Part shown: positions 3-63,999 of the stretch, in pieces
Position numbering within the stretch: position 1 is the stretch's first letter
How the letters are laid out: the number at the start of each line of letters is the position of its first letter
IMG/VR virus record: IMGVR_UViG_3300037245_001419
Location: 124,001-188,000 of that record
Strand: one strand, 5' to 3'
Length of the DNA: 64,000 nt
Made by a program: the position numbers and the translations under genes
The notes under the pieces: model-generated
What the model was told of the DNA's origin: nothing
Database searches by the model: none
What the model saw: the letters and a program-made list of their open reading frames with translations, nothing else

Positions 3-1997
3 GAGACTTCAGTTTACCCCTTAAGTGCAGACGGTGACAATACAAAAACATATAATAGAATAGTATACCCAACTAAAGATAATATTATAAAAGAGTTATT
101 CCCAGCGACAGTTTTTAATAGTGATCCTTTACACTTACTACGTAAAGGCCCTGGTGCAAATGTGAGAATACTAGAATACTACCCTATTAGCGTTCCATTT
201 AGAGATCAAGTTCTTGCACTAGGAACTTCTGCAGAAAGCTTAACAGACGTTAGAGCAGCAGAATTTTGGAAGTATACAGTTAATACTTTTACTGCAACTA
301 CAATGGATCTAAATATGTTATCATCAGATTTCGATTCATCAACAGCGACATGGAATACTGAAGTTGACAACGTTAGCGCCAATATGTCAGACACTAATTT
401 TACAGGTTTATCAGTCCATGACAATCTTGAATTTGCAAGATGGGAAATAACAGACAAAGACATTATTAAATCATGGATGATTCCAACCACATCAGCAAAT
501 AATAAAGGCGTAGTTACAAAGTATGAAGTTGAATCTTCACCAGTTACAGAAGGCCCATATTTTTCGTCGTTGGAAACAACATTGGGAAATGAAACTAGAC
601 CAGCATTTGTTATTAACACTAATTTTATTCTAGGTGGTGAACAAATTTGGACTGGTGCAATAAATTCTAACTGGTCTAATCCTGGAAACTGGCAAAATAA
701 TGAAATACCAAGCATAGGATCAGTAGCAGCTTTTGATGGTGGTGTGTCAACAGTCCCATGTGTATTAGACTCAAACCAATCAGTATATAACCTAACATCA
801 AATGCAGGTAGTGGAAGTATAAACTTATCGTCATTCGATTTGACAATTGAGGGTAGTATTTGTGACTTTAATGGATTCAGTTCATTGACACAAGAAACAG
901 GAGGCAAATTAATATTAATAAACTCATGCGTATTAAATCTAGGTCAAGAATTTGCTACCGCATCTTTGCAAACATTGGAAATAACAGAAAATGCACATGT
1001 AAATTATTTCGCAGATAAATCTCTGAGATTGACTGAAAACTTTAATGTCAGTGGTACATTTATGATGCATTCTAATCTTACATTAGATGGGGCGCAATCA
1101 TCGTTTGGTGAAAATGCAATTATAGATTCTGAAAGATCTGGTTCTACAGCATTGTACACAATAACATTATTCGGTGGTTCACTTTCAAACACAGGCACTT
1201 TAAATACTAAAGTTCATTATACTTTTTCTGATAATGTAATAACTGGAAGATTTTATGGGGGAAAAGTATCAGTATCTAACGATGGCAGTCCTTTCGCTTC
1301 AACTACAACTATGACATTTGGAGATGGACAACATACATACCTTGATGGCCTCTTTATTAATAGCTCTCAACAAGGTAGCTTATTAGTAATAGATGCCTCA
1401 GCCAACGACCCAGATATATTAATGTTACAGGGATCAGGATTACTTACAATAGCAACAGGTTTTCCACCTGAAGATGAACTTATATTTTTAATGGGATCAA
1501 AAGATTGGATAATATCTACAGACCAACTAGATTTAGCATTTGTAGATAGTTTCGATTTAGGTGGAGGTGGTGGTTTTTACGTAAATGGTGATACTACTAG
1601 TATAATGTCCCCACTAACAGATATCATAATGCCACCATTAACAATAAATTCATCAACTGAAGTAATTGATATTAATAATAACATATACACACAAAACTTT
1701 ACAATGAATATAGGGTCAACAGTTAATTTTAATCACTTTAATATTAGTGCAGTTGATGCAATCAATATATCAGGAAATTCAGACTCAGTAAATCTATTAT
1801 CTGGAACTTCTCTCGCAGCATCTAACATAAATATTGTTGGAGATCCTTTAGATTATATAGACTTATCGACTGAAGAGTTTTGGTATATAAGTGCATCAGA
1901 TACATTAGATGTTGTTCATGTTGATTTAAAATCTTCAGATGCATCTGGTGGTGTAACTGGTATAGCAATAAGATCAAATGATTTGGGAGAACCATAA
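3..1997 (+). CDS. Virion baseplate/tail-associated protein with beta-helix adhesin-like region (5' truncated)
   Basis: Frame is open from base 3 (ETSVYPLSADG...), so the track start at 162 is internal. Contains WTGAINSNWSNPGNW and beta-strand-rich repeats. TAATG overlap with the next baseplate gene. Confidence 0.6.
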   Translation, partial: ETSVYPLSADGDNTKTYNRIVYPTKDNIIKELFPATVFNSDPLHLLRKGPGANVRILEYYPISVPFRDQVLALGTSAESLTDVRAAEFWKYTVNTFTATTMDLNMLSSDFDSSTATWNTEVDNVSANMSDTNFTGLSVHDNLEFARWEITDKDIIKSWMIPTTSANNKGVVTKYEVESSPVTEGPYFSSLETTLGNETRPAFVINTNFILGGEQIWTGAINSNWSNPGNWQNNEIPSIGSVAAFDGGVSTVPCVLDSNQSVYNLTSNAGSGSINLSSFDLTIEGSICDFNGFSSLTQETGGKLILINSCVLNLGQEFATASLQTLEITENAHVNYFADKSLRLTENFNVSGTFMMHSNLTLDGAQSSFGENAIIDSERSGSTALYTITLFGGSLSNTGTLNTKVHYTFSDNVITGRFYGGKVSVSNDGSPFASTTTMTFGDGQHTYLDGLFINSSQQGSLLVIDASANDPDILMLQGSGLLTIATGFPPEDELIFLMGSKDWIISTDQLDLAFVDSFDLGGGGGFYVNGDTTSIMSPLTDIIMPPLTINSSTEVIDINNNIYTQNFTMNIGSTVNFNHFNISAVDAINISGNSDSVNLLSGTSLAASNINIVGDPLDYIDLSTEEFWYISASDTLDVVHVDLKSSDASGGVTGIAIRSNDLGEP

Positions 1998-3196
1998 TGC
2001 CACAAAATATTAATTGGGATTTCCAACAGAATACAGACATATATCCACCAGTAATTACATTTTCTAATTCTCAACCAGAATCTAAAATGATTATAGAGGG
2101 TACAGGATCTGTACATGTTAGAATAAAAGATAGTAACCCTATTGGGACAAGTATTAATATTATCACTTCCGCTGGATTTGTCCTTACATCGGAAAGTTTA
2201 GGTGAAATAGATTACAGCAGTTTTGTTGAAGTTGCTGTAAATGATGTCGAGTTCGATGTCATTAACATTTCAGCAAGTGGTGACGTTATAGTTTCAGCAA
2301 GTGATATCTATGACAACAGCACAACAGCAGCTGACGGTAAATGGTACTTTAGTTGTGTAGACCCTTTAGATGATTCTTTAGATAATAACAGACTTATAAA
2401 CTTAACAAACTTCTTACCTCAACACTTGGTTGAATCTGAAGTGTTTGATTTTATGAAGTTCTTTCAAGACTATGAAAATACAATGTATGAAGTTGGTAAT
2501 GATTGTGAAGGTCATTGTCATATATCTATCCTTAAAAAGATAGAAAGGCTAACCACATTACACGACGCAGATACGATAGATGAAGAATATATCCAATTTC
2601 TAGCCTCTTTTATGGGATATGATGGACTGGACGTAAACAGAACTGACATTGGATCGTTTAGAGTTGGTGATGTCGATGCAGATGATATTGATAACCTTAC
2701 ACCGGATCAAATTTGTACCTTAGAAAAACAAGAGGGAGAATACCTACGATTTGTAGTAAGAAACTTACCAAACTGGTATAGAATAAAAACTACAGATAAT
2801 GCGGTCAAGATAGCATTATTTTCATTTGGTATCATCGGAGAGCTTGAAACACTTTTTACAAATGACTATGATGAAAACTGGCTTGCTGAAGATAAAAAAG
2901 ATGGTGTTGATATATCAACTGAATTTGGCGTAAATCGTCAAGACTATTTTCCATCACCACACTTTGTAATCGTAGTAGATACTAAAATAACCCTCCCAAA
3001 CTGGATCAATAATATTGATCGAGTAAAAGACGCTGTTAATTCAATAAGACCCATAAATACTGTATTTGAAGGTATAAACTCTCGATACGATATGGATCTT
3101 ATAACAGTAGGTCTTAATGGTAATGGTGCCCAAGCTGGCGTAATGATCAAAAACAACATTCAAGTAGCGTGGAACAAACCATCAGCTAATTTATAA
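1997..3196 (+). CDS. Baseplate wedge protein (Tail_P2_I-like)
   Basis: FLPQHL...YIQFLASFMGYD...NLPNWYRIKTTDNAVKIALFSFG...AVNSIRPINT matches the P2 gpI-type baseplate pattern; lies upstream of the tail fibre. Confidence 0.7.
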   Translation: MPQNINWDFQQNTDIYPPVITFSNSQPESKMIIEGTGSVHVRIKDSNPIGTSINIITSAGFVLTSESLGEIDYSSFVEVAVNDVEFDVINISASGDVIVSASDIYDNSTTAADGKWYFSCVDPLDDSLDNNRLINLTNFLPQHLVESEVFDFMKFFQDYENTMYEVGNDCEGHCHISILKKIERLTTLHDADTIDEEYIQFLASFMGYDGLDVNRTDIGSFRVGDVDADDIDNLTPDQICTLEKQEGEYLRFVVRNLPNWYRIKTTDNAVKIALFSFGIIGELETLFTNDYDENWLAEDKKDGVDISTEFGVNRQDYFPSPHFVIVVDTKITLPNWINNIDRVKDAVNSIRPINTVFEGINSRYDMDLITVGLNGNGAQAGVMIKNNIQVAWNKPSANL

Positions 3197-3236
3197 ATAA
3201 TAATAAATACAATAAGATATTGACCAGGAGTTATAC

Positions 3237-7350: not shown

Positions 7351-7352
7351 TT

Positions 7353-8156
7353 ATGATTAACTACAATGAACTACTAGAAACTTCAAAACAAAAGTTTCAA
7401 GAGAATAACGGTAATGTATTTACTGAGTATTATAACTTCAATAAAGAAGGATCAAATGCTATCGCAATCAACAATATACATAATTTTGATTCTATCCCAA
7501 TAACAGATCATCAAAAAGAATTATGTAGTAAGATCACATTGGCAACTTCAATAATGAATCGTGAATCCCATTTGATGGAATCACTTAAGACCTGGATTAA
7601 ATTTCCATTTAAGAAGATTGTCATAGTTGATTGGTCTAGCGACAAACCGATAACTGAAAGCATCAAAGAACATTATGGTATTGATTATAAAACTTTAGAT
7701 GAACGAATAGAAATTCATCGTGTGTCAGATCAAAAATATTACGAACATGCTTTAGCTCGTAATGAGAAAATGAAACACACAGAAGGATGGGTACTCAGTA
7801 TCGACTCAGATATATTGCTATCTCCAAGATTCGGAAGATGTATCTGTCTAGGCGATAATAAAAAACTCATTTACAAAAACGATAGAAATAAAAATGACAA
7901 AGCTCTATATGGAACAACATTATTTCATAAAGACGAGTTTGATGCAGTGGGTGGTTGCAATACAAAATTCCATGGTTGGGGGTCAGAAGACACTACTCTA
8001 TTTGCAGATATGATTGACAACGGATGTAAGACTAGACTGTTAGTCGCTCATACAATGTTTCATATCCCTCACAGTGATTATGAGCGAGCAATTAATACCA
8101 AGCATGACGACATTTATGAAAGTTTAGCTAATAATAACGCCAGATTGGTAGAATAA
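7353..8156 (+). CDS. Glycosyltransferase (GT2 / GT7 C-terminal type)
   Basis: IVIVDWSS, SIDSD (DxD) and GGCNTKFHGWGSED (galactosyltransferase C-terminal motif). Confidence 0.85.
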   Translation: MINYNELLETSKQKFQENNGNVFTEYYNFNKEGSNAIAINNIHNFDSIPITDHQKELCSKITLATSIMNRESHLMESLKTWIKFPFKKIVIVDWSSDKPITESIKEHYGIDYKTLDERIEIHRVSDQKYYEHALARNEKMKHTEGWVLSIDSDILLSPRFGRCICLGDNKKLIYKNDRNKNDKALYGTTLFHKDEFDAVGGCNTKFHGWGSEDTTLFADMIDNGCKTRLLVAHTMFHIPHSDYERAINTKHDDIYESLANNNARLVE

Positions 8157-8165: not shown

Positions 8166-8217
8166 TGTACTTTAGTCAATAAAAATTATTGACTAAAGTA
8201 CATTTTGTTTATATACT
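8166..8217 (+). promoter_or_regulatory. 17-bp-arm palindrome overlapping a sigma70 promoter for the glycosylation island
   Basis: TGTACTTTAGTCAATAA-aaa-TTATTGACTAAAGTACA at 8166-8202; TTGACT(8189)-17 nt-TATACT(8212). Confidence 0.7.
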
Positions 8218-8236: not shown

Positions 8237-8986
8237 ATGTGTCGGAGCATTATGAATATTGAAAAGATACAGGAAGATTCCCTTGAGATAATCATCCCAT
8301 TATACAATTTAGGTCATCACCTAAAGGAATGTCTCACTTCAGTTTACAATAGTGAATCATCCCTACAATTTACAGTGACAATAGTCGATGACTGCAGCAC
8401 TGACGACTCTCTTGCAGTAGCTAGAAAATTAGCAATGGAACTAATTGATCACCCAGGACACAGACTCACTTCAGTTTACTCGAACCCGAAAAACGTACAC
8501 TTGTCAGCCACTAGAAATATTGCTTTAGCTCGTACATCATCTACGCTAATCATATGTCTTGATGCAGACGACATGATTCCACCAAATTACATTGAAGACA
8601 ATTATAAAAACATTTTAGAGCATGATGTAGATATTTCTTACACCAACTCACAATGCTTTGGTACATCATCACAGTTATTAACCTGGCCTGAGTTCAGTAT
8701 AGACCTAATTCGAGAGTCCCCATTCATCAATTGTTCTGCAATGTATAAACGAAACGTATGGGACAAGGCAGGGCCGTATGATGAGACTATGAAGTTAGGT
8801 TGGGAAGACTACGACTTCTGGCTTTCAGCAGCGAAGAGAGGCTTCAAGTTTAGGAAATGCAACACTACTTATTTAGCCTACAGACAATCAGAATCATCCA
8901 TGATCAACACTACAAATGAACAAGCAAATCAATTTAAGATCCGTGAACATTTAAGAGAAAAGCACCCAGCTTTTTATAGAGGTTAA
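8237..8986 (+). CDS. Glycosyltransferase family 2
   Basis: IIIPLYN, IVDDCSTD, SATRNIAL, CLDADD, GWEDYDFWL. Likely start at ATG 8252. Confidence 0.92.
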   Translation: MCRSIMNIEKIQEDSLEIIIPLYNLGHHLKECLTSVYNSESSLQFTVTIVDDCSTDDSLAVARKLAMELIDHPGHRLTSVYSNPKNVHLSATRNIALARTSSTLIICLDADDMIPPNYIEDNYKNILEHDVDISYTNSQCFGTSSQLLTWPEFSIDLIRESPFINCSAMYKRNVWDKAGPYDETMKLGWEDYDFWLSAAKRGFKFRKCNTTYLAYRQSESSMINTTNEQANQFKIREHLREKHPAFYRG

Positions 8987-8987
8987 T

Positions 8988-9188
8988 ATGTCAGAAAATA
9001 TTTATGATATGAAATTGCACGATGAAATAAGCTTAAATAGTTTTGTCACAATTCGTCGAGTACCTGGTGGTTGGCTTTATATAGACTTTAGTTCTTGCTC
9101 ACCAAACTCTTCTGTTACATCTACATTTGTACCATCCAACTCGGAATTTACAGGATATAACCAGGACAAAAATGAAAAACATGAATAA
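8988..9188 (+). CDS. Small hypothetical protein
   Basis: 66 aa ORF (RRVPGGWLY) tightly packed in the operon. Confidence 0.55.
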   Translation: MSENIYDMKLHDEISLNSFVTIRRVPGGWLYIDFSSCSPNSSVTSTFVPSNSEFTGYNQDKNEKHE

Positions 9189-9918
9189 TATTATACAAAG
9201 CCTATGGATAGGCCCAAAACTGTCAGTGATGGAACAACTATGCATCAAATCATTCTTAGCAAACGGACACGAGTTCCACCTTTACTGCTACAATGAAATA
9301 GAGAATGTCCCAGAAGGTACAACTATATGCGACGGTAACGAGATTCTACCAGAATCAGAAGTATTTTCATATCAAGTGGGGCCTGGAAAAGGTTCGTACT
9401 CAGCATTCTCAAACTACTTTAGATATAAAATGCTAGAAATGAAAGGTGGATGGTGGGTGGATACTGACATCATTTGCCTAAAACCATTTGATCACAAAGG
9501 TGAATTCGTATTCAGCTCTGAGATTACACACGAAAACACGCAACACACCACAAGTTCAGTAATCAAAGCCCCAGCAGGAAATGACTTTAGTTACTACTGC
9601 TATAATATCTGTGCAGATCAAGATAAAAAGACTCTTGAATGGGGTACAGTTGGCCCTAAATTAGTCAAAGGAGCAGTAGAGTTCTTCGAAATGGAAGCAT
9701 ATGTTCAAGAACCCCATGTTTTTTGCCCTCTAGGATACCAACACGCCCCTTTAATTGTACAAGAAGGCATTGACATTGACTTCCCAGAAGAGACCTATGC
9801 GGTGCACCTATGGAACGAAATGTGGAGACGGCACGGCATCGACAAAGAAAAGAAATACGATGAGTCAACAATATACGAACAACTAAAGTCACGTTACGGA
9901 GTAACCAATGATAACTGA
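9169..9918 (+). CDS. Glycosyltransferase family 32-like (DxD sugar-binding)
   Basis: IIQSLWIG, AFSNYFRY, GGWWVDTD, WGTVGP, YAVHLWNEMW. Confidence 0.88.
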   Translation, partial: KMKNMNNIIQSLWIGPKLSVMEQLCIKSFLANGHEFHLYCYNEIENVPEGTTICDGNEILPESEVFSYQVGPGKGSYSAFSNYFRYKMLEMKGGWWVDTDIICLKPFDHKGEFVFSSEITHENTQHTTSSVIKAPAGNDFSYYCYNICADQDKKTLEWGTVGPKLVKGAVEFFEMEAYVQEPHVFCPLGYQHAPLIVQEGIDIDFPEETYAVHLWNEMWRRHGIDKEKKYDESTIYEQLKSRYGVTNDN

Positions 9919-10372
9919 AGTAAAAGCCCCCAATAAATATACTCATTCTAACCTGTTTTTGGCTGGATCAATTGAAAATGGTAAAGCCGAAGAATGGCAA
10001 CAAAGATTTCTTACAGACATGCGAAAGAAATTTACAGTCAACCCAGAAACAAATTTTTTAGTACTCAATCCACGTAGAGACAACTGGTCATTTTGTAGCA
10101 CTGAAATGGAGAAACAAGTATCATGGGAGCTTGATGGACTAGCATCTTCAGATTACATCGCCATGTACTTTGATCCTGATACAATTTCTCCAATTAGCCT
10201 CCTTGAATTAGGGCTATTCGCAACGGAAAAGATCTTCATATGTTGCTCACCTAGATACTATAGATATACTAACATAAAAGTATTATGTCAAAAAGCCGGA
10301 CTTCCTTTATTTGCTGAAGAAGAAGAATGGAGAGATGCAATTTTCCAAGCTATGACCGAGGAGTATTCATGA
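9908..10372 (+). CDS. Nucleoside 2-deoxyribosyltransferase-like protein
   Basis: LFLAGSI...WQ...LNPRR...QVSWELDGL...SPISLLELGL. Confidence 0.85.
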   Translation: MITEVKAPNKYTHSNLFLAGSIENGKAEEWQQRFLTDMRKKFTVNPETNFLVLNPRRDNWSFCSTEMEKQVSWELDGLASSDYIAMYFDPDTISPISLLELGLFATEKIFICCSPRYYRYTNIKVLCQKAGLPLFAEEEEWRDAIFQAMTEEYS

Positions 10373-11400
10373 ACATTTTATACCTAGTGGACAAAAAATA
10401 TTACGACACCAAGATGTCAAGAATTCGTTTCCGAACCATGGAAGCAATCGAAGAATTATGTGATGATTCGCCAGATAATAAATTTTACTGGTATGGCCCA
10501 GGTTGGAACGGATGGGACATACTGAAGACAGCATCAGAAAACATTAAAGATGCATTTGATGGTAATTCAAATCACATAAACCTTATAGTAGCATATAAAC
10601 CTTTAGATATCTACAAGGCAGATGAACTCCATAAAGAATATAAATGCTGCTTAAATTATAATGAAATGTATGATGTTGATTGGACTAAAAAAGAGATCAA
10701 ATATTTTGGTGCGACATTAGTTATCTGTCACCACTATAACGACTGGGAAAAATTTAATCATTATCCATCATTAAATGCGATAGAGTTCCATTACATTCCA
10801 CACTCAGCAGATGAGAAAGCATTTAAGCAATGGAGCTTTGACGGTGTACAGCTACCAAAAATATATGATGTCATGTTAGTGGGTGCATATAATGTATCTA
10901 ATAAATTTGGCAACATATACCCCTTACGTGACAGGCTATCAAAGCTACTTCCAAAGATAGCACCCAAATATAGATGGGGTATATTTAACCATCCATCATA
11001 TGAAAGAGAAGACGCTAATTCAAATCAGTACGCAGAGTTTTTCAGTAAAGCTTTAAATTCTACCAGGATTGCCGTATGCGACTCTTCTATATTTAAGTAT
11101 AGATTAGGCAAGTACATTGAAGTTCCTGCAAGCGGAACTGTATTAGCAGCAGATATGCCGATGACACATCCAGTAGACCAAGAAGCCCTTAAAAATGTCA
11201 TAATCGACATAAATATGGATATGTCAGATCAAGAAATTATAGATACTATAGCAGAATACTTAGAAGACGATACTAAGTATAACCTAAAGGTAAAGAATGG
11301 ATTGGAATATGCTAAAGCATTTACATGCGAATCATACGCCACTAAATTCTTAGATATAATTACGGATTTATATGAAGATACAAATACACACCCTCAATAA
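10369..11400 (+). CDS. GT-B glycosyltransferase (CgeB/YkvP-like)
   Basis: YDVMLVG...YPLRDRL...KYIEVPASGTVL. ATG 10369 follows GAGGAG. Confidence 0.75.
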   Translation: MNILYLVDKKYYDTKMSRIRFRTMEAIEELCDDSPDNKFYWYGPGWNGWDILKTASENIKDAFDGNSNHINLIVAYKPLDIYKADELHKEYKCCLNYNEMYDVDWTKKEIKYFGATLVICHHYNDWEKFNHYPSLNAIEFHYIPHSADEKAFKQWSFDGVQLPKIYDVMLVGAYNVSNKFGNIYPLRDRLSKLLPKIAPKYRWGIFNHPSYEREDANSNQYAEFFSKALNSTRIAVCDSSIFKYRLGKYIEVPASGTVLAADMPMTHPVDQEALKNVIIDINMDMSDQEIIDTIAEYLEDDTKYNLKVKNGLEYAKAFTCESYATKFLDIITDLYEDTNTHPQ

Positions 11401-11815
11401 TAATTTAGCTAAACTTAATGAAATATTAATATATGATAGCAAAGCAGATGAGTATCGACACATTAGTCGTAGCATTAAACCAGATGTTGTATGGTGCTTA
11501 TCAATAGAGGACTGGAAGTCTTTAGGTATAGACACGCTGAAGATACATAAGATAGTATTCAGTATGTATATATCAGACAAATACGAATTTAGTAGAAAAG
11601 AGTTTTTATTTAGAGACAACTTTGCAGCAGCATATCATGTTGTAGATGAAGAGACGAAAGAGCTAATTGAAAAATTGTCATTTAAACCTGTATACCTTAT
11701 TCCATATGAAGAAGATAATATAGATACATTTGATAGAACTGTAATTGAAAACTTTAAAACATCCAAAACTTTTCATAAAAAAATAATGGATATATTTAAA
11801 GAACTTAAAGAGTAA
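11372..11815 (+). CDS. Hypothetical protein in the glycosylation operon
   Basis: ORF overlaps its neighbours in the operon. Confidence 0.55.
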   Translation: MKIQIHTLNNNLAKLNEILIYDSKADEYRHISRSIKPDVVWCLSIEDWKSLGIDTLKIHKIVFSMYISDKYEFSRKEFLFRDNFAAAYHVVDEETKELIEKLSFKPVYLIPYEEDNIDTFDRTVIENFKTSKTFHKKIMDIFKELKE

Positions 11816-11816
11816 T

Positions 11817-12686
11817 ATGAGAAGGGTAGTATTTACATCGGAAAGATCTAACATGGCGACTGCAGGTTCTTTTTACCTGCGTGCAGTCCAAGTGTACATG
11901 GCATTGCAGAGACATGGCATAAAAGCTTTTATGGAGTCCCCTGAAAAATTAGCTACACAGTCAGGAAACATTATATTCTTTATAAAACCTATTGAAAATA
12001 GCATGGAAAAGATTGAAACACTATGCGAGAATAACACAGTAATTTTAGATCCTTTAGATTTCATACCAATATTTAAAGACCTACCTCCTGGATTAGTACA
12101 TGGTTGCTTATTCAACAATAATAAAGCTAGAAATAAGTTTATTCATTTGTTTAAAAATAAAGAAATGTGTCCAGTTATCTATCATCACATAGACTTACGA
12201 TTTCGGAGCGCAACGAATCCACCAGACGAACTAAAGTTTTTATACTTAGGCACTAACTCTGAAAGAAAAGTATATGCTTACAATGAGTTCGACGATATTG
12301 ATTACAAATCAATTAATGGCAATCCTTCAGATTTTAACCAGTACACAGATCTTATAGGAAAGTACAACTGTCACTATATTGTTAACGGTTTAAAAGACGC
12401 TAAACGAAGATCATACGAGCCTTTCACAAAGTTAGCAATGGCATCTATTAATCACAGTCCCGTAATAACATATAAGAAAGATCACATTGAAATATTAGGA
12501 GAATACTATCCTTATTATATAACTAGTAAAGATATAGGTTCTGTAAAAAATATGATAAACTACATAAAAAAGACTTATAAAACTAAAGTATGGAATGATG
12601 CAGTCTCTATAATGAAAGATGCTAAAGAGAAGTTTTTACTTGGTAATACAATTCATACATATATAGATATTATAAAAAAACATTAA
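11817..12686 (+). CDS. Putative GT-B glycosyltransferase
   Basis: GSFYLRA...KP...ILDPLD...YHHID...KLAMA pattern; operon context. Confidence 0.5.
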   Translation: MRRVVFTSERSNMATAGSFYLRAVQVYMALQRHGIKAFMESPEKLATQSGNIIFFIKPIENSMEKIETLCENNTVILDPLDFIPIFKDLPPGLVHGCLFNNNKARNKFIHLFKNKEMCPVIYHHIDLRFRSATNPPDELKFLYLGTNSERKVYAYNEFDDIDYKSINGNPSDFNQYTDLIGKYNCHYIVNGLKDAKRRSYEPFTKLAMASINHSPVITYKKDHIEILGEYYPYYITSKDIGSVKNMINYIKKTYKTKVWNDAVSIMKDAKEKFLLGNTIHTYIDIIKKH

Positions 12687-12718
12687 GGATAAATTGAAAT
12701 GAAAGTTTATATAGTGTC

Positions 12719-14211: not shown

Positions 14212-14217
14212 TAATTT

Positions 14218-15520: not shown

Positions 15521-15532
15521 CAAGGAGTATAT

Positions 15533-55659: not shown

Positions 55660-56835
55660 TATTTTTTAAATTGGTAACAAATATTATTAGCTACTGTTAA
55701 ACCGCCACATTTAATAGGGTCTCTAACAAGTTTACAACAACCTTGATAAATAAGCTTGTCTAGTATCCGTTTGATACTTTTCTTCTTATTCTGTATGAGA
55801 GCACTCTCCATATAAGTAGGGACTTTAGGCTCTTTAAAGATAATACCAAATATTTGGCTGATTGAAAAGATAGTATCATTCGTAAAGATGATAGTTCTTA
55901 CTTTTCCGTACAATTCATCATTTGGTATACGATAACTCAAATTAACTTGACTATCCTTAAAGTATTGATCCTTGACATAATTAGGTTTTGTTTGTTCTTT
56001 ATGCATTGTTACTCCTTACCGTTTCTATTATTAAAGATAGTTAATTAGCTATCCTTTGTCAACAACTAAATGTTAAAATCTTAAAGAGTATTTGAAAATG
56101 TCAGCTATGCTGTTAAGCTTATTTGATTTTTTGGTTAGGTCTTCAATAGTTATCAATTGATTACATAGTTCAGATAAATCGGTTGGTGAAATATCGTCGG
56201 TTTCATATAAAGTAATATTCTCTTTATACAGATCTCTCAGTTTTGCAAATGATAAAAATATTGTGGCATGTTTCGCTGTTATATGCTTTATGATTTGCTT
56301 ATCACCCTGCATAATTTGAAAGAATGGGTATATTAAATCTACACCAAAATGAGACTCTTCTATTAAAACATGGACACCGTCAAAGTATTCTCCAATGATA
56401 GCATATTTGAAAGAAGGTGTTATATCGACTACTTCATTGCAGTAAACTATTGCGTAACACTTCTTAATTTCAAATGTTTTTTTCATAAATTATTCCTACA
56501 GTTTAACTATTATAAAGATAGATAGTTAATTAGTTATGTACTGTCAACAACTAAAGTAATATTTTAACAATGTAAAATACAATTTTACGTTTAAAGTCAA
56601 TTGGGTATAAATGGTTGATTGTAATTAACACCATGCTTTTATAGCTCTCTTTTATGGTAATGGTCGGTGCACAAACATGATGATCTTTTACAATATCGTT
56701 TCTAATGAGTGTTATACCTGCTTGAACGTCCGATAAATAAGAGCCTTCTTTAGTTTGTGCCTTAACCAGTTTAGGTGCTTTACGGTCTCTGTGAGCTGTT
56801 TTAATTGCCTGTATAATGTTCTTAATAATATCCAT
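55659..56835 (-). CDS. Three early hypothetical ORFs (55659-56006, 56073-56486, 56551-56835)
   Basis: Each preceded by its own promoter or hairpin element. Confidence 0.55.
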
Positions 56836-56909
56836 GTTTACCTATAAAGAAACTGAAGTATACTATAAACGGAATAACATATAGTATACTTCAGTCGGTC
56901 GGGTCGGAG

Positions 56910-57548
56910 TTAATATTGTGATTTGCCTGTAACAATGTTTCTTATCGTTTCATTTTGGGTTAGATCAGGTTCTGCTGTATCAATTAAACCCCACCATGAT
57001 CCAAACTTAGTCTCTAAAATTATTTCGTTGTGTTCCTTGAGTGCCTTGAGTATGTGGTCACTAACTAAATACCATCGCTTAACCGTGTAACTTTCTGAAT
57101 CTAGACCCTTTAGAGTGGTTAGTTTGTCTTCTATCGTGGATTCAATATCCTCTTTTTCATCTAAACAAGTTCTTACATTTGAAACGTCTTCAAGTAATTG
57201 TGTTAACTTGTCATCATTGGTCATAGTAGGTTCAATACAGTCCTCAATAGCTTCTAAATCGCTCTTCAGTTGATATACTTCAGTTGATACATTGTCTAAA
57301 TCCTGTACGTACTGTTCAATCAAATCTGTAACGTCATCATTGCTGAGTTGTTCACCTTCCCACATATAATACTCAGTATTGATAGCGTCATTTTCTAAAT
57401 GTGGATTACAATTAATTAAATATTCAACTAAAGTACTTTGATCTTTGTAAACCTCTTCTCTGATAAGTTCATAAATCCTGTAAACAATGTTACTCTCTTT
57501 AAATGATGCTTTAACTACTGCATTGCTTTCGTTTGTATGTGACATAAT
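56910..57548 (-). CDS. Acidic coiled-coil early protein with FGSWWG motif
   Basis: WYLVSD.I...L..H.E.ILE..FGSWWG. Confidence 0.65.
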   Translation of the reverse strand: MMSHTNESNAVVKASFKESNIVYRIYELIREEVYKDQSTLVEYLINCNPHLENDAINTEYYMWEGEQLSNDDVTDLIEQYVQDLDNVSTEVYQLKSDLEAIEDCIEPTMTNDDKLTQLLEDVSNVRTCLDEKEDIESTIEDKLTTLKGLDSESYTVKRWYLVSDHILKALKEHNEIILETKFGSWWGLIDTAEPDLTQNETIRNIVTGKSQY

Positions 57549-57653
57549 TTTCTCCAACTCTTAACCTGTATTAAATATAGCTAATTAGTTAACCCCTGTC
57601 AACAAAAAAAGAGATACACCAAAATTAATTAGTGTACCTCTTTTCGGTCGGAG

Positions 57654-57965
57654 TTATAGTCTTTCGTAATTTTCAATCTCACCATTTGAGACATAAAATT
57701 TAATTCTGTCAATCTCTTTTTTAGTTTCTTCAATACCAATACCCATAACTAAATTATCAGAGTAGTTTTTGAGGATTGCTACAATATACTTTAGTTTTTT
57801 GTTTAGCTTGTCGGTATCTCTTAACAATATTTCATCTTGTTCCAGTACATTAAATTGTTTACCTTCTGAAATAGTTGTATTAATTGTTTCTTGATTTATA
57901 GCTATACTACATTGCAATTCACAAATTAAATCTATTGCTGTTCTATTCGCTTTAATGCTACTCAT
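57654..57965 (-). CDS. Early cassette ORF
   Basis: AGGAGTGCCAAAC-ATG start; TAACTCCGACCG end. Confidence 0.65.
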   Translation of the reverse strand: MSSIKANRTAIDLICELQCSIAINQETINTTISEGKQFNVLEQDEILLRDTDKLNKKLKYIVAILKNYSDNLVMGIGIEETKKEIDRIKFYVSNGEIENYERL

Positions 57966-58027
57966 GTTTGGCACTCCTACCGTTATCTATTATTAAATAT
58001 AGCTTATTAACTAAAGTATGTCAACCC

Positions 58028-59028
58028 TTATTGTGATTTGTGACATACTAAACAAATATTATGACCTTCAATATAGATAAAACGTCTAGGGGGACACGTA
58101 CACATTTTTCTAGCTTCCGCTTCCATCTCTCTAGCTTGTTTAATTAGCTTTTGTGCAGTAACAAACATCCCTTTAATTTTATTAGCTTTATCGTCTGTCA
58201 TTTCACGTTTAAGCCATACTTCAGTTTGATTCTCTATTATGTCAATAACAGATAAACGTATACCCATACTATCATCATCAACCGTTACACTGTCAACATC
58301 TTGTCTATCAACATCTAACTCTAAGTTAAGATCATTATATACTTCTCTTAAGTGCATAGCTAAATCATGTTTGGCTATATCGGGGTAGTTTAACGGTAAT
58401 ACTATAGTTAAATTCATTCGTTGCTCCTACCGTTTAATCTGCAAAATTTGCTGTTATGGTATTACATTCAATATCGATTGTGATTTCAGTAAAGCCTAAA
58501 CCTTTAACATAGCCTTGATAAGTAGGTTTTTCTTTAAACTTTTCTACCGCTTCTTTACAAGTTTTACGTTGTTCAGTTGAGCACAAATATTCACCGTTCT
58601 TAAAGATGTTTATTTTTCTAGCCATTATTTACTCCAATTCTTAACCTGTATTAAAGATAGTTAATTAACTAAGCACTGTCAACAATAAAAGGTTTAAATT
58701 CACAAATATATTCTTTTTTAACCTCTTCAACTAAAGTCAAAAGCTCATTACTAAAGTAAGTACTATCATTTTGAGCCATTGAGTCAAGTGCCTTGACAAA
58801 TGTCAAAATAATTTGATCTTTGGTTGTGATACTTTTTCCAACTTCTAAAATACTTGTCTTAGTAGCAAGCAATAAATCTAAAACAGTGCTCTCCAGATTC
58901 TTACTGATAATATCATTAATATTAATATCGTCATACTTTTCAGAAAATCTTAGTATACAAGATATACCACTAATAGAATTGCTAATATGTGAACCACAAT
59001 TAGAGTCACTGATTGAACCAATATTCAT
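58028..59028 (-). CDS. Three early ORFs (58028-58417, 58434-58625, 58669-59028)
   Basis: Promoter/SD elements; 58028 ends in a MCTCP...CLVC zinc domain. Confidence 0.6.
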
Positions 59029-59132
59029 AATATACTCCCTGTATTAAATATAGTTAATTAACTAAGCAATGTCAACAAAAACTGAAGTATACCAAAAATA
59101 AATTAGTATACTTCAGTTTAGGCGGTTTGGAG

Positions 59133-59840
59133 TTATTCTTCTATTACTAACTGCATCACTTTAGCAAGTTTCAAAGATTGAGATACTGATAGCTTAGTAT
59201 TGTAAACCTCAATCTTGATAGTGTCATCTTTAACGTGAATACATAAAGAATTATTTTCATCTGAGTAATAATAATTTTTGTGTTCAATGTATCTACCATT
59301 GGGAAAAGCTATTGTAAGAGCCTCAACCGTTTCGGTCTTGAAATTTTTGATTTTAAGAGCTTCCTGCTCCTGTTTTTCTTTTACGTCCAGTTCCCATTGA
59401 TTTTCTCTATCTAACCATGTACACAAATCTGTAAGCTTTGTTTTAAGGGTAACAAGATTTTTAAGAAACAAATTGATGGTTTTAGGTCGTTCTTCTATTT
59501 CGTCACTGTATTGTTTTGAGTTGTTATTGAATTTAGCAACCCGATACAATGTAAACCTGGGGAATTGTTGACACGCACAAAAGAACTTATACTTACCATC
59601 TAAGACAAGTTCGTTTGAGTTGTCATTGTATTTTGGATTGTTTAACGTGCTTTCAATGGTAGTGAAAAATTGACTAAAGAATTGTCTGTATACTTCATTT
59701 TGTTCTAGTTCGCATAAATTATCCCAAACTCTCATTGAAGGATTTTTCACTAAATACTCAGCAATATCCGAGCGGTTTGGATATTTTTTAGTCATCATGT
59801 GAATTTTATTGACAGAAAGAATAGTTTCAAAAGATCTCAT
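59133..59840 (-). CDS. Early cassette ORF
   Basis: Conserved RBS unit; TAACTCCAAACCG end. Confidence 0.65.
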   Translation of the reverse strand: MRSFETILSVNKIHMMTKKYPNRSDIAEYLVKNPSMRVWDNLCELEQNEVYRQFFSQFFTTIESTLNNPKYNDNSNELVLDGKYKFFCACQQFPRFTLYRVAKFNNNSKQYSDEIEERPKTINLFLKNLVTLKTKLTDLCTWLDRENQWELDVKEKQEQEALKIKNFKTETVEALTIAFPNGRYIEHKNYYYSDENNSLCIHVKDDTIKIEVYNTKLSVSQSLKLAKVMQLVIEE

Positions 59841-59918
59841 GTTTGGCACTCCTACCGTTTATCTATTAATAAATATAGCTTATTAATTAATACCTGTCAA
59901 CAACTAAATCACTTTAGT

Positions 59919-60125
59919 TTATAATATTTCTTGTCTTATTATTTGATGCAATGTATTGTAGTCTCCTTTTCTATACCTTGCATCCGTATACAAAACCCCT
60001 TTGACTTTTCTTTTTGCCTCATGGTCATTATCAGCCATAAATGGTATTATGGTGTTTTTACTGACATTACCACCCATTACAACATCAAATTCTACAATAT
60101 TGTATGTTAATTCATAGTGATTCAT
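59919..60125 (-). CDS. Early cassette ORF
   Basis: AGGAGCGCCAAAC-ATG. Confidence 0.6.
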   Translation of the reverse strand: MNHYELTYNIVEFDVVMGGNVSKNTIIPFMADNDHEAKRKVKGVLYTDARYRKGDYNTLHQIIRQEIL

Positions 60126-60235
60126 GTTTGGCGCTCCTACCGTTATCTATTATTAAATATAGTTAATTAACTAACCCTTGTCAACAAAAAAAGAGATACA
60201 CCAAAATTAATTAGTGCACCTCTTTTCGGTCGGAG

Positions 60236-60523
60236 TTAAAAGTGTAAAAATAGTTTTGTTGTTTGCTCAAATGTACTAACCAATTGATCATTATAGATAT
60301 TTTCAAATCTATCAACTATCGGAGCGTTTTTGCCATGAATTTTAATGAAGTCGATATCATATAAATCCATGCCATTTAAAGTTATTTTACAGTAGTTTGA
60401 GTGACGACTACCCTTGAATCTAAACATTAGGGAGTTATCATCTTTTAAGAATTGTTTCACCCCCAAGAAGTGACTAATTCTTGATCCACCCAATTGCTCT
60501 AAAATTGTTTCTGCTACTTCCAT
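60236..60523 (-). CDS. Conserved phage early protein (VAETILEQLGG family)
   Basis: VAETILEQLGG...ITLNGMDLYD.DF...IY.DQL...FE..T.L. Confidence 0.7.
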   Translation of the reverse strand: MEVAETILEQLGGSRISHFLGVKQFLKDDNSLMFRFKGSRHSNYCKITLNGMDLYDIDFIKIHGKNAPIVDRFENIYNDQLVSTFEQTTKLFLHF

Positions 60524-60576
60524 TTGGTACTCCTACCGTTAACTTATATTAAATATAGTTAATTAACTAAAGTATG

Positions 60577-61627
60577 TCAAGCGTTTTTTAATGCAAAGTA
60601 AATTAAATCTTCAATAGTTTTGCAGTCCTCTATTAATGAGTAGATAGTGTGATTAATATCACTACTACTTATACCTTGACCACTACCCTCAAAATCGCTT
60701 TCAAGTTGTTTTGATGCAATGTCACGTATTGCTGTTTGTATTATCTTATTTGATGATCTATAGAGCTTAAAAACACGTTTCCAATTTTCGGCGTGTGTTA
60801 ATTCTTTAACAGGTCTTACAATATCACAAGTGATGCATTCACTCATTACTTCTTTAGGAAATGACTCTGTATTAAACATTTGTCCAACAAAATACTTTTT
60901 TATTTCAAAATCTGAACTATCACCATTAACTGAAGTTTTCCAACTGTGACCATTTTCACACGTAAGTGTTGCACTAATAAGATTTGACATATTTGGTACT
61001 CCTACCGTTTATCTATTAATAAATATAGCTTATTAATTAACCGTTGTCAATGGATTATACAAATTAATAATTAATTTTATAACCTTTTCTTAAAATTATA
61101 TCTCTAACCAATTCCCTGTCTATTGTATCACCATCAAAATCTAGGTCGGGTAGTTCTTCAGCTCTAATTTCAATAGCTTCTCTAATATCACTATCTTTTA
61201 AACCGTCAATTGGATAAATCCCCTCTATAGAGTAAAAGCTATTAAAGTATTCTATAAACTTCTTTATACAATGTTCTTTTTTATCAGCCTCTGTCATACC
61301 ATTCAAAATCTCTAAAGTCATAATTGTAACCCGTTAGTTAACTATATAATAAATATAGCTTATTAATTAACCTTTGTCAATAAGTTTCTGTATTTCGTCG
61401 GTAATAATAATATTATTTTGTGACCTGTTTTTTTCCCAATGTGCACTGTCTGGCAATACACTATTTTTACCGTCATTTGTCCATATAGTATATTTTGACT
61501 TAAAAGGTTTTTCCTTTAAAACAATATTACCTTGTAATGGGAATGTAACCTCATTGTTACAACTATTAAATTTATTGTACCCATGGATAATAACTCTTTT
61601 GCCACCAACTGTTTTAGTCTCAATCAT
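60577..61627 (-). CDS. Three early ORFs (60577-60990, 61064-61321, 61367-61627)
   Basis: 60577 has a CENGHSW.T.VNG...C zinc ribbon; promoters at 61026 and 61356. Confidence 0.6.
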
Positions 61628-61700
61628 AATAAGCCTTTAAAAAAACTGAAGTACACTATACCAATGTCAAAAAATATAATGTACTTCAGTCGGGTCGGAG

Positions 61701-61964
61701 TTAAATTACTTTAGTTAGTGTATCGGTAAGGTACTGATTAAAATCCTTTACACTTATATCCATTAATGAGCCGTCAACTTCAACCCCGTCAACATAACAA
61801 CGTTGCACCCAAGTTCTATAACACTTCATAACAACATTTTTACCGTTCAACTCAAATTTTGGATAATACCAACTATCTTTGTCCTGTTTTCTCACGGTGT
61901 TAATGTGCTTTACCGCATCAATTACTGTTTTAATCGGGGTCAATGTAATTGCTTCTTTAATCAT
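61701..61964 (-). CDS. Early cassette ORF
   Basis: Conserved RBS unit; TAACTCCGACC end. Confidence 0.65.
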   Translation of the reverse strand: MIKEAITLTPIKTVIDAVKHINTVRKQDKDSWYYPKFELNGKNVVMKCYRTWVQRCYVDGVEVDGSLMDISVKDFNQYLTDTLTKVI

Positions 61965-62077
61965 GTTTGGCACTCCTACCGTTATCTATTAATAAATATA
62001 GCTAATTAACTAAGTACTGTCAACAAAAAAACTGAAGTATACCAAATAAATTCAATATACTTCAGTTTGGGTCGGAG

Positions 62078-62491
62078 TTAATTTCTAACTTCAAATCCAT
62101 TTGTTGATGGATTATATTCCATACGCTTAATATTTTTATGTTTAAGGTAGTTTAATAGCATTCCAAACTGTGTAGTCGCTTTATATTTAGCAGTGCAAGG
62201 GTGTTGCATTGCTTTGATCTTAAAGATCTCAAACCCTCTTATAAGCTTCTGAAAATCCACTATCTTATCATCACTATAATCAAATAATACTTTAGGGGCG
62301 TAAGGCATAAAATAGTCATCACTTGATTGAAACGTAAATTTGCATATTTCTACTAAACAGTGACGATTTTTATCAAATGATCTAATTAAAATAGAGTGCT
62401 CTCTAATATCCTTAAGAAATCGATTACTATGTGTACTACTTCCATAACTGAAGTAAATTTTCCCTAATTTCAATTGAACATAATCTAACAT
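62078..62491 (-). CDS. Early cassette ORF
   Basis: Conserved RBS unit; TAACTCCGACC end. Confidence 0.65.
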   Translation of the reverse strand: MLDYVQLKLGKIYFSYGSSTHSNRFLKDIREHSILIRSFDKNRHCLVEICKFTFQSSDDYFMPYAPKVLFDYSDDKIVDFQKLIRGFEIFKIKAMQHPCTAKYKATTQFGMLLNYLKHKNIKRMEYNPSTNGFEVRN

Positions 62492-62562
62492 TTTTTGGCA
62501 CTCCTACCGTTTATCTATTAATAAATATAGCTAATTAACTAAAGTATGTCAACCCCTAAACG

Positions 62563-63129
62563 CTAATAACCTTTATTTTTTAACATGGTTGAAATACCAC
62601 CTGTATTAGCTAAACCTTCTTTTTTAATTAGACCGTTAATACTTTTATTTAATCCTGTTATAGCTTGCTTTGCTTGACTTTCTATTATAGCCGTAAATAC
62701 TTCAGTTATAACCGTTTTTTTACGCTTTCCTACTTTGCCATTTCGAGCCATTTCAGCTACTCTATAAGCATAAAAATCATCAAGCTCCTTTATATCACCA
62801 CACTCATTAAGATACTTTGTAGATACCTTATTAGCCTTTAAAACTACTGTTATGTTCTTGAATACTTTAGTTTGTATAGTAACCATAAATAACCCCTAAA
62901 TACAATTAACTAACATTTTCTTAAGCTTCTTTCTTACTTCAGTTTTGCCGAAAAAATCCCCTTTAATGTGACCTTTTGGTGCCAGTGATATACTAAATTG
63001 AATATTATTAGGTATATCATTACATTTAGTATGTTTACGTATGTATTTTACTCTCAATAAATGACCCTGTTTAGTATCAATCATTTTAGTAATAACATGC
63101 TTTGTTTTGGTACGTGTAACAGTTTCCAT
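62563..63129 (-). CDS. Two early hypothetical ORFs (62563-62886, 62896-63129)
   Basis: GGGG-type SDs; compact ORFs. Confidence 0.55.
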
Positions 63130-63141
63130 TTTAAGCCCCTT

Positions 63142-63999
63142 TTAAGCTACTATTTTACATCTGGTTATTTTGGTCTGCTTTTGTTCTTTGTAGGTGCTGT
63201 GCTCTTTTATAGTCCCTGTAATAGTACCTTTTGTGCCATTGTCAAAAAACTTATTTGTAGACCATGAAAAGATATAATTTTCTTTAGATTGAATAGTGTA
63301 AATAAAAGTAGTACCATATTTTGTATCAAAAGAACTTACCCTTATTATTTCACATTCAAAAGATATTTTGTCTTTAACCGCTCCAAAAAATTCATTGACG
63401 GTTACTTTAGTTTCTTTTTTCTTGATTAACTCAGTACCGTTTAATAGGTAATCAAAAACAGAATAAACAACTAAACCCTTTTTAGTACTCATAGTAGTGA
63501 GTGATAAGAATATATTACGGGTAAATTCTGAATTGTCGGTTTTGATTTTATTTGTCCAGTATTCATAAAACGAATCAATATTAAACAGCTTTATAACCGC
63601 TTCAAAATCATCTATCTTTTGAACTACAATAGCGTTTACTATATCTATTGTAGTCATACCGTTATTATCGGGTTTTGCTTTTGAGTAATACCGCTTATCG
63701 TTATAGATGACATAAAAAGCTTTGTTTAAAATTTCATCAATACATTCAACGTGTTTAAAATATTCTACCTCTTCTAAATTCTGAATACTTACAAACAGCT
63801 TTGTATAGTTATCTAACTGCATTGCAATATTAACACCAAAATACTCTTTTGCACAACTACTGGCAATTTGAATAATCTCTTTTGTTTCGGTATCTTGAAA
63901 CAAGTGTACTTTTTTACGGTCTCGAATAGTATTACAGTGATCACAGTAAAATTTAACATCAAAGTAGCTACTCAAATCAAGATCATTGTCACTTCTAAA
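63142..63999 (-). CDS. Conserved large-phage protein with zinc-binding and C-terminal OB-like region (5' truncated)
   Basis: CDHC...R.R...IASSC; FFG.V.DK...TKYGTT...WST...TGTIKEH..Y...KQT..TRCK. Frame is open to the window edge. Confidence 0.65.
   Translation of the reverse strand, partial: FRSDNDLDLSSYFDVKFYCDHCNTIRDRKKVHLFQDTETKEIIQIASSCAKEYFGVNIAMQLDNYTKLFVSIQNLEEVEYFKHVECIDEILNKAFYVIYNDKRYYSKAKPDNNGMTTIDIVNAIVVQKIDDFEAVIKLFNIDSFYEYWTNKIKTDNSEFTRNIFLSLTTMSTKKGLVVYSVFDYLLNGTELIKKKETKVTVNEFFGAVKDKISFECEIIRVSSFDTKYGTTFIYTIQSKENYIFSWSTNKFFDNGTKGTITGTIKEHSTYKEQKQTKITRCKIVA

Follow-up and report, generated by a model that had tools for sequence, protein, structure and literature searches.

An uncultured 212-kb T4-like phage from marine sediment carries one strict ten-base word about 440 times, and this word is kept by selection even inside genes. 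It may thus act as a dispersed "self" tag read by a sequence-specific factor, although both the factor and the use are inferred from sequence alone. The word has the form 5'-A-R-C-T-R-A-A-G-Y-A, in which the outer R and Y must be complementary. Tags of this kind are known in bacteria (uptake sequences, Chi), while our literature searches found none described for phages.

The analysis started from a 64,000-bp stretch of DNA (here "the window"), corresponding to positions 124001-188000 of a 211,777-bp virus record (G000). An initial annotation had noted that the 8-mer ACTAAAGT/ACTTTAGT is heavily over-represented in the window, in both orientations and inside genes. This observation proved to be real, and stronger than first described. 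The 8-mer occurs 66 times (31 on the plus and 35 on the minus strand), whereas dinucleotide-preserving shuffles give 4.89 +/- 2.16 copies with a maximum of 11. The earlier tally of more than 45 was therefore an undercount, while its chance estimate of about 5 was right. Most of the positions originally listed are exact or off by one or two bases (12230, 26062, 47093 and 62864); the copy listed at 56541 actually lies at 56550. The complete record holds 230 copies against 16.5 expected under an order-3 Markov model, the highest z-score of all 8-mers. Several accompanying claims were also confirmed: the encoding of TKV and TLV tripeptides, the extension to AACTAAAGTA (A at -1 in 92% of the sites and A at +8 in 72%), the existence of a sister word, ACTGAAGT (40 copies in the window, 132 in the genome), the presence of the word in both arms of a palindrome at 8166-8202, and its position directly after TTGACA in several early promoters.

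Two further words that had escaped notice, GCTAAAGC and GCTGAAGC, belong to the same family and bring the number of sites in the window to 125. In the genome, ACT[AG]AAGT is present in 362 copies and GCT[AG]AAGC in 74, for a total of 436 sites or 2.1 per kb. The two types share the same A flanks. In contrast, words with mixed arms (such as AACTAAAGCA) stay at background and have background flanks. The features referred to below, in window coordinates, are as follows.

6-63411, both strands: all 125 copies of the word family in the window (ACTAAAGT 66, ACTGAAGT 40, GCTAAAGC 12, GCTGAAGC 7), 96 of them in ORFs and 29 between ORFs.
1206-1213, plus strand: typical in-gene copy, in frame 0 of ORF 3-1997, read ACT AAA GTn = T-K-V.
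11311-11318, plus strand: example of the covarying GCT[AG]AAGC type, of which there are 19 in the window (for example 24678, 25424, 42981 and 52353 on the plus strand and 7749, 8522 and 12987 on the minus strand).
8166-8202, no strand assigned: perfect 16-bp inverted repeat GTACTTTAGTCAATAA/TTATTGACTAAAGTAC (-12.9 kcal/mol, z -8.9), each arm holding the word (8169-8176 on minus, 8192-8199 on plus), between ORFs 7353-8156 and 8237-8986.
17210-17217, plus strand: copy overlapping the TAA stop of ORF 16422-17210 (gaaTAACTAAAGTAaa), representative of copies found just after a stop codon.
62524-62552, minus strand: early promoter TTGACA-17-TATATT with the word at 62538-62545, directly after the -35 hexamer (TTGACATACTTTAGTTAAT); the same arrangement occurs at 60552-60580 (word at 60566), 57996-58024 (word at 58010), 49571 and 36288.
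62029-62068, minus strand: terminator-like hairpin with arms AAACTGAAGTAT / ATACTTCAGTTT (words at 62031 on plus and 62059 on minus), followed by a T-run and the next TTGAC promoter; it corresponds to hairpin family B of the initial annotation and to a promoter-terminator (PeSL-type) cassette (PMC4122927). Other pairs lie at 45905/45925, 49594/49633, 56852/56888, 59081/59110 and 61645/61683.
34262-34747, minus strand: XRE-type helix-turn-helix protein (161 aa), the only annotated sequence-specific DNA binder found in the window and a putative candidate for the reader.

To assess whether the enrichment could reflect coding habits, a condition set beforehand as a potential refutation, the coding sequences were shuffled in two ways. 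They contain 142 copies of the 8-mer, against 36.3 +/- 5.6 after synonymous-codon shuffling and 11.3 +/- 3.7 after codon-order shuffling; thus, the enrichment does not disappear. Synonymous opportunities are nearly saturated: 53 of 64 TLV, 43 of 50 TKV, 38 of 41 TEV and 28 of 31 TSV tripeptides (83-93%) are spelled with the word. These tripeptides are themselves 2.0-3.6 times over-represented, with TLV, TKV and TEV among the five most over-represented of all. Of the 436 sites, 310 (71%) lie in ORFs, 165 in sense and 145 in antisense orientation. Plus and minus copies are balanced in nearly all 10-kb bins, with no switch point, and spacing is near random (CV 1.17; 62 gaps of 60 bp or less, against 50.6 +/- 6.3 expected). 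Density is highest where sequence is free (spacers, positions just after stop codons, terminator stems and promoter spacers) and falls as protein constraint rises, from 6.6 per kb between genes to 1.72 per kb in non-core genes and 1.14 per kb in the most conserved core genes.

Comparison with other phages showed that the two known close relatives, G001 and G011 (approximately 72-76% nucleotide identity), carry the same word. In G011 the ten-base form AACTAAAGTA occurs 67 times against 0.9 expected. Among aligned sites, 15 of 29 are conserved in G001 and 47 of 79 in G011 (52-59%), against 16% and 11%, respectively, for random 8-mers, a conservation 4-5 times better than that of random 8-mers between diverged relatives. 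The changes seen at conserved sites are R to R swaps, centre flips that reverse the orientation, and one compensatory ACT..AGT to GCT..AGC double change, a pattern of purifying selection with allowed swaps. Segments of G011 DNA with no nucleotide similarity to G000 still have 2.5 sites per kb, pointing to ongoing accumulation. The word is lineage-specific, as relatives with about 50% capsid identity are not enriched.

The original interpretation, a genome-wide binding site for a phage nucleoid, segregation, protection or packaging protein analogous to matS, parS or Chi, is only partly supported. That the word acts on DNA, is genome-wide and is kept by selection is supported by its occurrence in both orientations relative to transcription, its survival of codon-preserving nulls and its conservation, as would be expected of a recognition site for a DNA-binding or DNA-processing factor. 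However, no binding protein was identified, the sequence offers no basis for choosing among the four roles, and the distribution does not match that of matS, parS or KOPS: the 436 sites occupy all regions, with no regional restriction, polarity or spacing rule. The link to the -35 box holds for only about 10 of 436 sites, and only 3 of 11 near-consensus early promoters in window positions 56000-63000 carry the word.

Other identities were examined and set aside. The word is not a promoter, and promoter-terminator cassettes account for fewer than 15% of copies. TRCTTYA resembles TGCTTYA, but the word does not qualify as a T4 MotA box, since no MotCF domain was found and positions beyond -2 to +9 carry no information. 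It is not the T4 late promoter either: canonical TATAAATA sits upstream of the structural genes and is a different word, and the two are not spatially linked (5 within 50 bp, against 8.2 expected). Nor is it a site for a detectable phage methylase, as none of four DNA methylase families (PF01555, PF02086, PF00145 and PF02384) was found in the 93%-complete record.

What the analysis establishes is the strict ten-base duplex word with its complementary outer positions, its abundance in this phage and in its two known close relatives, its maintenance at the DNA level in either orientation, and its relation to constraint. That a sequence-specific factor of this phage lineage reads the word is an inference, as is the notion that the benefit, or the transmission advantage, grows with the number of copies per stretch of DNA. 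In this view, which we hold with moderate confidence, the word would set phage DNA apart from host DNA, following the logic of bacterial uptake sequences and Chi. Ten-base forms occur about 1.4 times per kb in the phage, against about one per 100-200 kb in the bacterial genomes searched (at most about 54 copies per 2-3 Mb); with the host not identified, a host-encoded reader or host-wide enrichment is not excluded. The tag might serve end protection or recombination, condensation or early shut-off, packaging, or priming. The complementary-arms rule suggests either two-fold symmetric reading or a protein-stabilised pairing of the arms. Several findings sit uneasily with this model. Pfam and PHROG scans of about 130 of roughly 358 ORFs gave only three XRE proteins as sequence-specific binders, and an 8-bp palindrome with half-sites 5 bp apart does not suit a helix-turn-helix dimer. 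A simple homodimer with additive half-site reading would accept mixed arms, which are not enriched. The three-base arms do not fold on their own (0 kcal/mol). Motif-free relatives also lack a thymidylate-synthase-family gene, so the idea that the tag replaces base modification has no comparative support. Finally, a pure transmission-bias ("drive") origin with no benefit to the phage would give the same statistics.

Among alternatives, all of which we consider unlikely, the one that survives best is a Chi-like signal. Here a DNA-end-processing nuclease (host RecBCD/AddAB, or the phage's own gp46/47, PD-(D/E)XK or DEDD exonucleases) would read the word and be tamed by it, so that degradation from any end of a headful-packaged, permuted genome would stop within about 1 kb and switch to recombination. 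More copies would help and both orientations would be needed; each orientation occurs about once per 970 bp. The terminase, UvsX, UvsW and gp46/47 are of the T4 type, and no DNA methylase or hydroxymethylase family was detected, so the DNA is probably unmodified. A DenA-like GIY-YIG nuclease, a PD-(D/E)XK exonuclease and an RNase T-like exonuclease are shared with the motif-bearing G011 and not detected by tblastn in the motif-free relative G003. Yet known Chi sequences are asymmetric, G-rich and read on one strand, and nothing in that mechanism asks for complementary arms. Motif-free relatives also lack a modification route. No enrichment was seen in five candidate marine genomes or in 301 Campylobacterota genomes, a sample chosen without knowledge of the actual host.

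Somewhat less likely are architectural or regulatory binding sites, as proposed in the initial annotation, where a phage protein would coat or condense the DNA and, at early promoters, block RNA polymerase, resembling SPO1 TF1 or, on a larger scale, mycobacteriophage stoperators. A strict ten-base site is the right size for one small DNA-binding domain or a ribbon-helix-helix dimer, the word directly follows TTGACA in about 10 early promoters, and two XRE genes (genome positions 7656-7967 and 8467-8832) are shared with G011 and not found in G003. Against this, most near-consensus early promoters in the region examined lack the word, about 300 copies lie inside genes in either orientation, where a regulator has no evident use, and there is no phasing or clustering beyond chance.

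More doubtful still is a site of covalent DNA processing, such as site-specific nicking (as in T5), base modification by a host or novel enzyme, or lagging-strand priming. Strict 8-10 bp specificity is typical of nucleases and modification enzymes, and the phage has several nucleases and two DNA ligases, one NAD-dependent and one ATP-dependent. The A at -1 together with R-C gives 5'-GTT or 5'-GCT on the other, pyrimidine-rich strand, and these are the two template triplets of T4 primase. However, T at +8 is rare (10%), so only one strand would carry a primase triplet; spacing is not more even than random; none of the four methylase families was found in the record; and there is no association with late promoters, which in T4 are activated from nicks. 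The absence of any function, the word being a by-product of mutation or repair bias, cassette duplication or codon habits, is largely refuted: although duplicated cassettes in the small-gene regions carry the word and one-mismatch neighbours are mildly depleted (to about 0.6-0.7 of expectation), no single neighbour is strongly depleted as short-patch repair bias would require, flanks beyond -2 to +9 carry no information so that most copies are independent, codon-preserving nulls are exceeded by 10 to 35 standard deviations, and sites are conserved far above background while tolerating compensatory and orientation-flip changes.

A more speculative and improbable reading is that the arms must pair with each other. 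The outer R and Y are complementary in three phage lineages, the next position out is actively non-complementary, the centre is free to flip, and one orthologous site shows a compensatory change. The word would then be used as a protein-stabilised fold-back of 3 bp with a 2-nt tip on single-stranded or cleaved phage DNA, rather than as an ordinary duplex binding site. If so, it would represent a new class of dispersed phage signal, for example for priming, strand-end formation or recombination restart.

Among known systems, the DNA uptake sequences of Haemophilus (USS) and Neisseria (DUS) are 9-12 bp words found roughly once per kb, in both orientations and mostly inside genes, with preferred reading frames and over-represented tripeptides. 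They are enriched between genes, often in inverted pairs that form terminators, are fewer in constrained proteins, and are conserved but turn over between relatives. The phage word shares these properties. It differs in being carried not by a competent bacterium with an uptake receptor but by a lytic-type, T4-like phage (with Gp23, Gp20 and a T4-type terminase), with no uptake machinery involved, in having complementary arms with covariation, which USS and DUS lack, and in a density about twice as high. Chi, which is also enriched in some phage genomes, is likewise a short over-represented word whose value rises with copy number and which marks DNA as "own" for a nuclease and recombinase; it is, however, asymmetric, read on one strand and co-oriented with replication, whereas the phage word shows no polarity and has complementary arms. 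The HIP1 palindrome of cyanobacteria also has an 8-bp palindromic core present about once per kb in genes and spacers and conserved above expectation, its function being still debated. But HIP1 (GCGATCGC) is a perfect palindrome tied to resident DNA methylases, whereas the phage word has an asymmetric centre (RA/TY) and asymmetric A..A flanks (complementary flanks: 127 seen, 195 expected), and no methylase family was detected in the phage. The PeSL cassettes of T4-like phages (Comeau, Arbiol and Krisch 2014, PMC4122927) match the intergenic contexts, as in the small-gene regions a stem-loop with a T-run is followed by a TTGACA-17-TATATT early promoter, repeated between genes. These 50-100 bp intergenic cassettes explain about 10 promoter copies and about 21 hairpin pairs, but not the roughly 300 in-gene copies. 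Lastly, the stoperators of cluster A mycobacteriophages are many copies of one asymmetric repressor site dispersed over a phage genome, often at gene junctions. They number about 25-35 per genome, are almost all intergenic and have one orientation relative to transcription, whereas the word described here is present in 436 copies, most of them in genes and in both orientations.

The octamer ACTAAAGT and its complement occur 66 times in the 64-kb window, 31 copies being on the + strand and 35 on the - strand, whereas dinucleotide-preserving shuffles yield 4.89 +/- 2.16 copies with a maximum of 11. The 211,777-bp IMG/VR virus record to which the window belongs (bases 124001-188000; hereafter G000), rated 93% complete by CheckV, holds 230 copies, against 16 for the backwards-read control and 16.5 expected under an order-3 Markov model. 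This is the top z-score of all 8-mers. The over-representation described in the initial annotation was thus confirmed and extended; the positions listed there are right to within a base or two, except for 56541, which is really 56550.

Closer analysis showed the real word to be wider. Two related octamers are also enriched in the record: ACTGAAGT, with 132 copies against 12.9 expected, and GCTAAAGC, with 53 against 5.6. Eight of the ACTGAAGT copies are supplied by simple duplication within an 18- or 36-nt tandem coding repeat (AGTTCAACTGAAGTGATTAGCTCATCTGAAGTGATT...) at the end of the contig (G000:C1:211050-211510, sequence segment L017). Sites of the form ACT[AG]AAGT have an A at position -1 in 92% of cases and an A at +8 in 72%, with nothing beyond -2 to +9 carrying information. 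Sites of the form GCT[AG]AAGC have the same flanks (82% and 78%). In contrast, mixed arms sit at expectation, ACTAAAGC occurring 7 times and GCTAAAGT 6 times with about 8 expected for each, and their flanks are at background. The word is therefore 5'-A-R-C-T-R-A-A-G-Y-A, with the outer R and Y complementary, as represented by AACTAAAGTA and AGCTAAAGCA but not by the mixed-arm form AACTAAAGCA. The next position out is less complementary than chance (127 seen, 195 expected). The genome holds 436 eight-base cores, of which 295 are full ten-base forms. The perfect palindrome ACTGCAGT is also enriched in the record, at 15 places against about 2.7 expected; since it lacks the A..A flanks, it may be a separate signal.

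To assess whether the enrichment could result from coding or composition, the coding sequences were shuffled in two ways. Against 142 copies of ACTAAAGT observed, synonymous-codon shuffling gave 36.3 +/- 5.6 and codon-order shuffling 11.3 +/- 3.7. The other three words behave alike. Disappearance of the enrichment under such a null model had been set beforehand as the condition that would refute the observation; the enrichment stays. In the encoded proteins, 53 of 64 TLV, 43 of 50 TKV, 38 of 41 TEV and 28 of 31 TSV tripeptides are spelled with the word. TLV is the most over-represented tripeptide of the proteome, TKV and TEV rank fourth and fifth, at 2.7-3.6 times expectation, and TSV is at 2.0 times. 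Selection on DNA has therefore changed protein sequence. PWE and WEV are also among the most over-represented tripeptides. A family of small genes at G000:C1:197000-205100 (segments L016 and L017) ends in ...PWE(V/G), each member being followed by TAA-ACTAAAGT-ATG or -GTG, which leads into the next gene.

Of the 436 cores, 126 lie between ORFs as delimited by crude ORF calls, a density of 6.6/kb, against 1.72/kb in non-core genes and 1.14/kb in the most conserved core genes. Within genes, 165 copies are sense and 145 antisense, and the frames that would create a stop codon are empty. There is no polarity along the genome and no phasing; spacing is near random (mean 486 bp, CV 1.17, largest gap 3.7 kb), and no preferred pair distance appears. 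One-mismatch neighbours are mildly depleted, none of them strongly.

The intergenic copies fall into three contexts. In the first, the word directly follows the -35 hexamer of early promoters of the form TTGACA-17-TATATT. About 10 copies are of this kind, and only 3 of 11 such promoters in window 56000-63000 carry the word. In the second, the word forms both arms of AT-rich stem-loops followed by a T-run and the next promoter. There are about 21 such pairs, including the hairpin at window 62029-62068, and a sister pair (words at 59081/59110) folds at -12 kcal/mol. In the third, the word overlaps or lies just after stop codons, ahead of the next ribosome-binding site. The first two contexts match the PeSL promoter-terminator cassettes described for T4-like phages (PMC4122927), but together they hold fewer than 15% of the copies. 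The simplest reading is that the word fills whatever sequence is free. The early promoters on the - strand of window 57990-62560 (for example 62524-62552) further share a spacer built around the 14-bp perfect palindrome TAGTTAATTAACTA. The sequence GTTAATTAAC is counted 24 times on both strands of the window, which is 12 places; it looks like an operator in its own right and overlaps the word by four bases.

The phage is T4-like. It has Gp23, the Gp20 portal, a T4-type large terminase, a tail sheath and UvsW, as well as a family B polymerase, a gp41-type helicase, primase, gp32, UvsX and gp46/47. No cultured phage has a capsid protein more than 37% identical. The two runs that contain the phage are marine sediment metagenomes, and near-identical contigs from other samples show that the sequence is real. 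Further features of the genome, with coordinates in the window or in segments (L) of the record, are the following.
L010:2846-19912 and L011:676-7040 (genome about 22.8-47 kb): 23 tRNA genes and a tmRNA with tag peptide ANNTFAVAA.
Window 42386-43753, - strand: a tRNA nucleotidyltransferase.
L009:2360-4345, + strand, and window 25879-26901, + strand: two DNA ligases, a full-length NAD-dependent LigA type and an ATP-dependent type.
L011:14662-17829, - strand: a class II (B12-type) ribonucleotide reductase of 1055 aa with a weak match to an intein-splicing domain.
L011:19171-19593, nearby: a 141-aa DenA-like GIY-YIG nuclease.
L009 and L010 (genome 13.9-39 kb): a block of host-like and counter-defence genes comprising a Na/Ca exchanger (45% identical to a Bathymodiolus symbiont protein), two TerD proteins, nicotinamide phosphoribosyltransferase, a NUDIX protein, an anti-Pycsar Apyc1 homologue and an RlaP-type nucleotidyltransferase.
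Window 9127-17210, + strand: a block of glycosyltransferase and nucleotide-sugar epimerase genes downstream of the tail genes, whose target could be DNA, the virion or the host surface.

Two diverged relatives carry the same word family with the same covariation. In G001 (31.8 kb, 76% nucleotide identity to G000) the counts of ACTAAAGT / ACTGAAGT / GCTAAAGC are 13 / 14 / 11. In G011 (104 kb, about 72-74% identity) the word counts are 114 / 66 / 38 / 9, with mixed arms at 1-4 each. Alignment with G000 showed 15 of 29 sites to be conserved in G001 and 47 of 79 in G011, whereas random aligned 8-mers are conserved at 16% and 11%, respectively. The changes seen at conserved sites are A to G swaps at the central purine and two centre flips that reverse the orientation, together with one replacement of AACTGAAGTA by AGCTAAAGCT, which is a compensatory double change. 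DNA of G011 with no nucleotide similarity to G000 still has 2.5 sites/kb; each lineage therefore keeps adding copies. Relatives with about 50% capsid identity have fewer copies than the control word. One of these motif-free relatives, the complete genome G003, has no comparable word and shows only a mild excess of ATGTATCT / CGATGTAT (62 against 20 and 44 against 12; segments L079-L089). Partial pattern scans of IMG/VR and of metagenomes found no other carrier, and a partial metagenome scan and a second, likewise partial, viral scan for paired words gave only tandem repeats and chance hits. As for variation within the population, 2 variants fell in sites against 3.0 expected, numbers too small to give the comparison any power.

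A number of known signals were considered and rejected. The word is not the late promoter: late genes have canonical TATAAATA promoters, which are present and separate. It is not a MotA box, as no MotCF domain and no linked -10 element were found, nor a site for a detectable phage methylase, four methylase families having been looked for in the record and not found. No thymidylate-synthase-family gene is present in G000, but the motif-free relatives G003 and G004 lack one too, so that a contrast based on hydroxymethyl-cytosine gives no argument either way. Short-patch repair bias was discarded because no neighbour word is strongly depleted, and a free hairpin because the predicted folding energy is 0 kcal/mol. 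Association with the ends of homology blocks between relatives was not significant (11 sites within 30 bp against 7.6 +/- 2.7). Homologues of the Na/Ca exchanger point only vaguely to marine Gamma- and Zetaproteobacteria, Campylobacterota and Flavobacteria as hosts; their genomes and 301 Campylobacterota genomes are not enriched, and the word is not host-wide in any of the 306 bacterial genomes searched. A protein reading the word was sought through Pfam and PHROG scans of about 130 of roughly 358 ORFs, a profile of genes shared with G011 but not G003, and an Atlas look-up of a 605-aa orphan; none of these gave a convincing candidate. Among the phage proteins that might be considered are XRE proteins encoded at genome 7656-7967 and 8467-8832 and at window 34262-34747, and the DenA-like, PD-(D/E)XK and RNase T-like nucleases. 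In the literature searched, no paper contains the word as such, the only hit, for CTRAAG, being an unrelated paper on canine fetal fluid, and phrase searches found no report of an iterated word in a phage genome.

Together, these data establish a strict, orientation-free DNA word under strong purifying and positive selection and specific to one phage lineage. That a sequence-specific factor reads it, and that the pay-off rises with copy number, are inferences from sequence alone; the word would then act as a dispersed self-tag. The interpretation in the initial annotation, a genome-wide binding site for a phage nucleoid/segregation, protection or packaging protein, is thus partly supported, being right in kind (a DNA-level recognition site) but not established in any of its specific forms. 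Among the specific uses that might be envisaged, we rank end protection or recombination, in a Chi-like manner, first, followed by condensation or early shut-off, and then by nicking, modification or priming. None of these explains the complementary-arms rule; a homodimer with additive half-sites would accept mixed arms. Two paralogous readers, or a protein-stabilised pairing of the arms, would explain it, although both remain hypothetical.

If these inferences hold, some step of the phage life cycle must read phage DNA sequence-specifically about every 500 bp. The reader would reveal either a new way for a phage with apparently unmodified DNA to tell its own DNA from that of the host, or a new replication or recombination signal, and the complementary-arms rule with an asymmetric centre provides an unusually sharp test of specificity for any candidate. 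The word is also a practical marker, identifying DNA of this phage lineage in metagenomes and flagging recently acquired genes. Genome-wide words of which more copies are better have so far been known as a bacterial matter, as with uptake sequences, Chi and HIP1; here, a virus spends real protein-coding freedom on one, the encoded tripeptides being among the commonest excesses in its proteome. The statistical anatomy of the word is that of bacterial uptake sequences, with which it shares the presence of both orientations, frame and tripeptide bias, terminator pairs and fewer copies in constrained genes.
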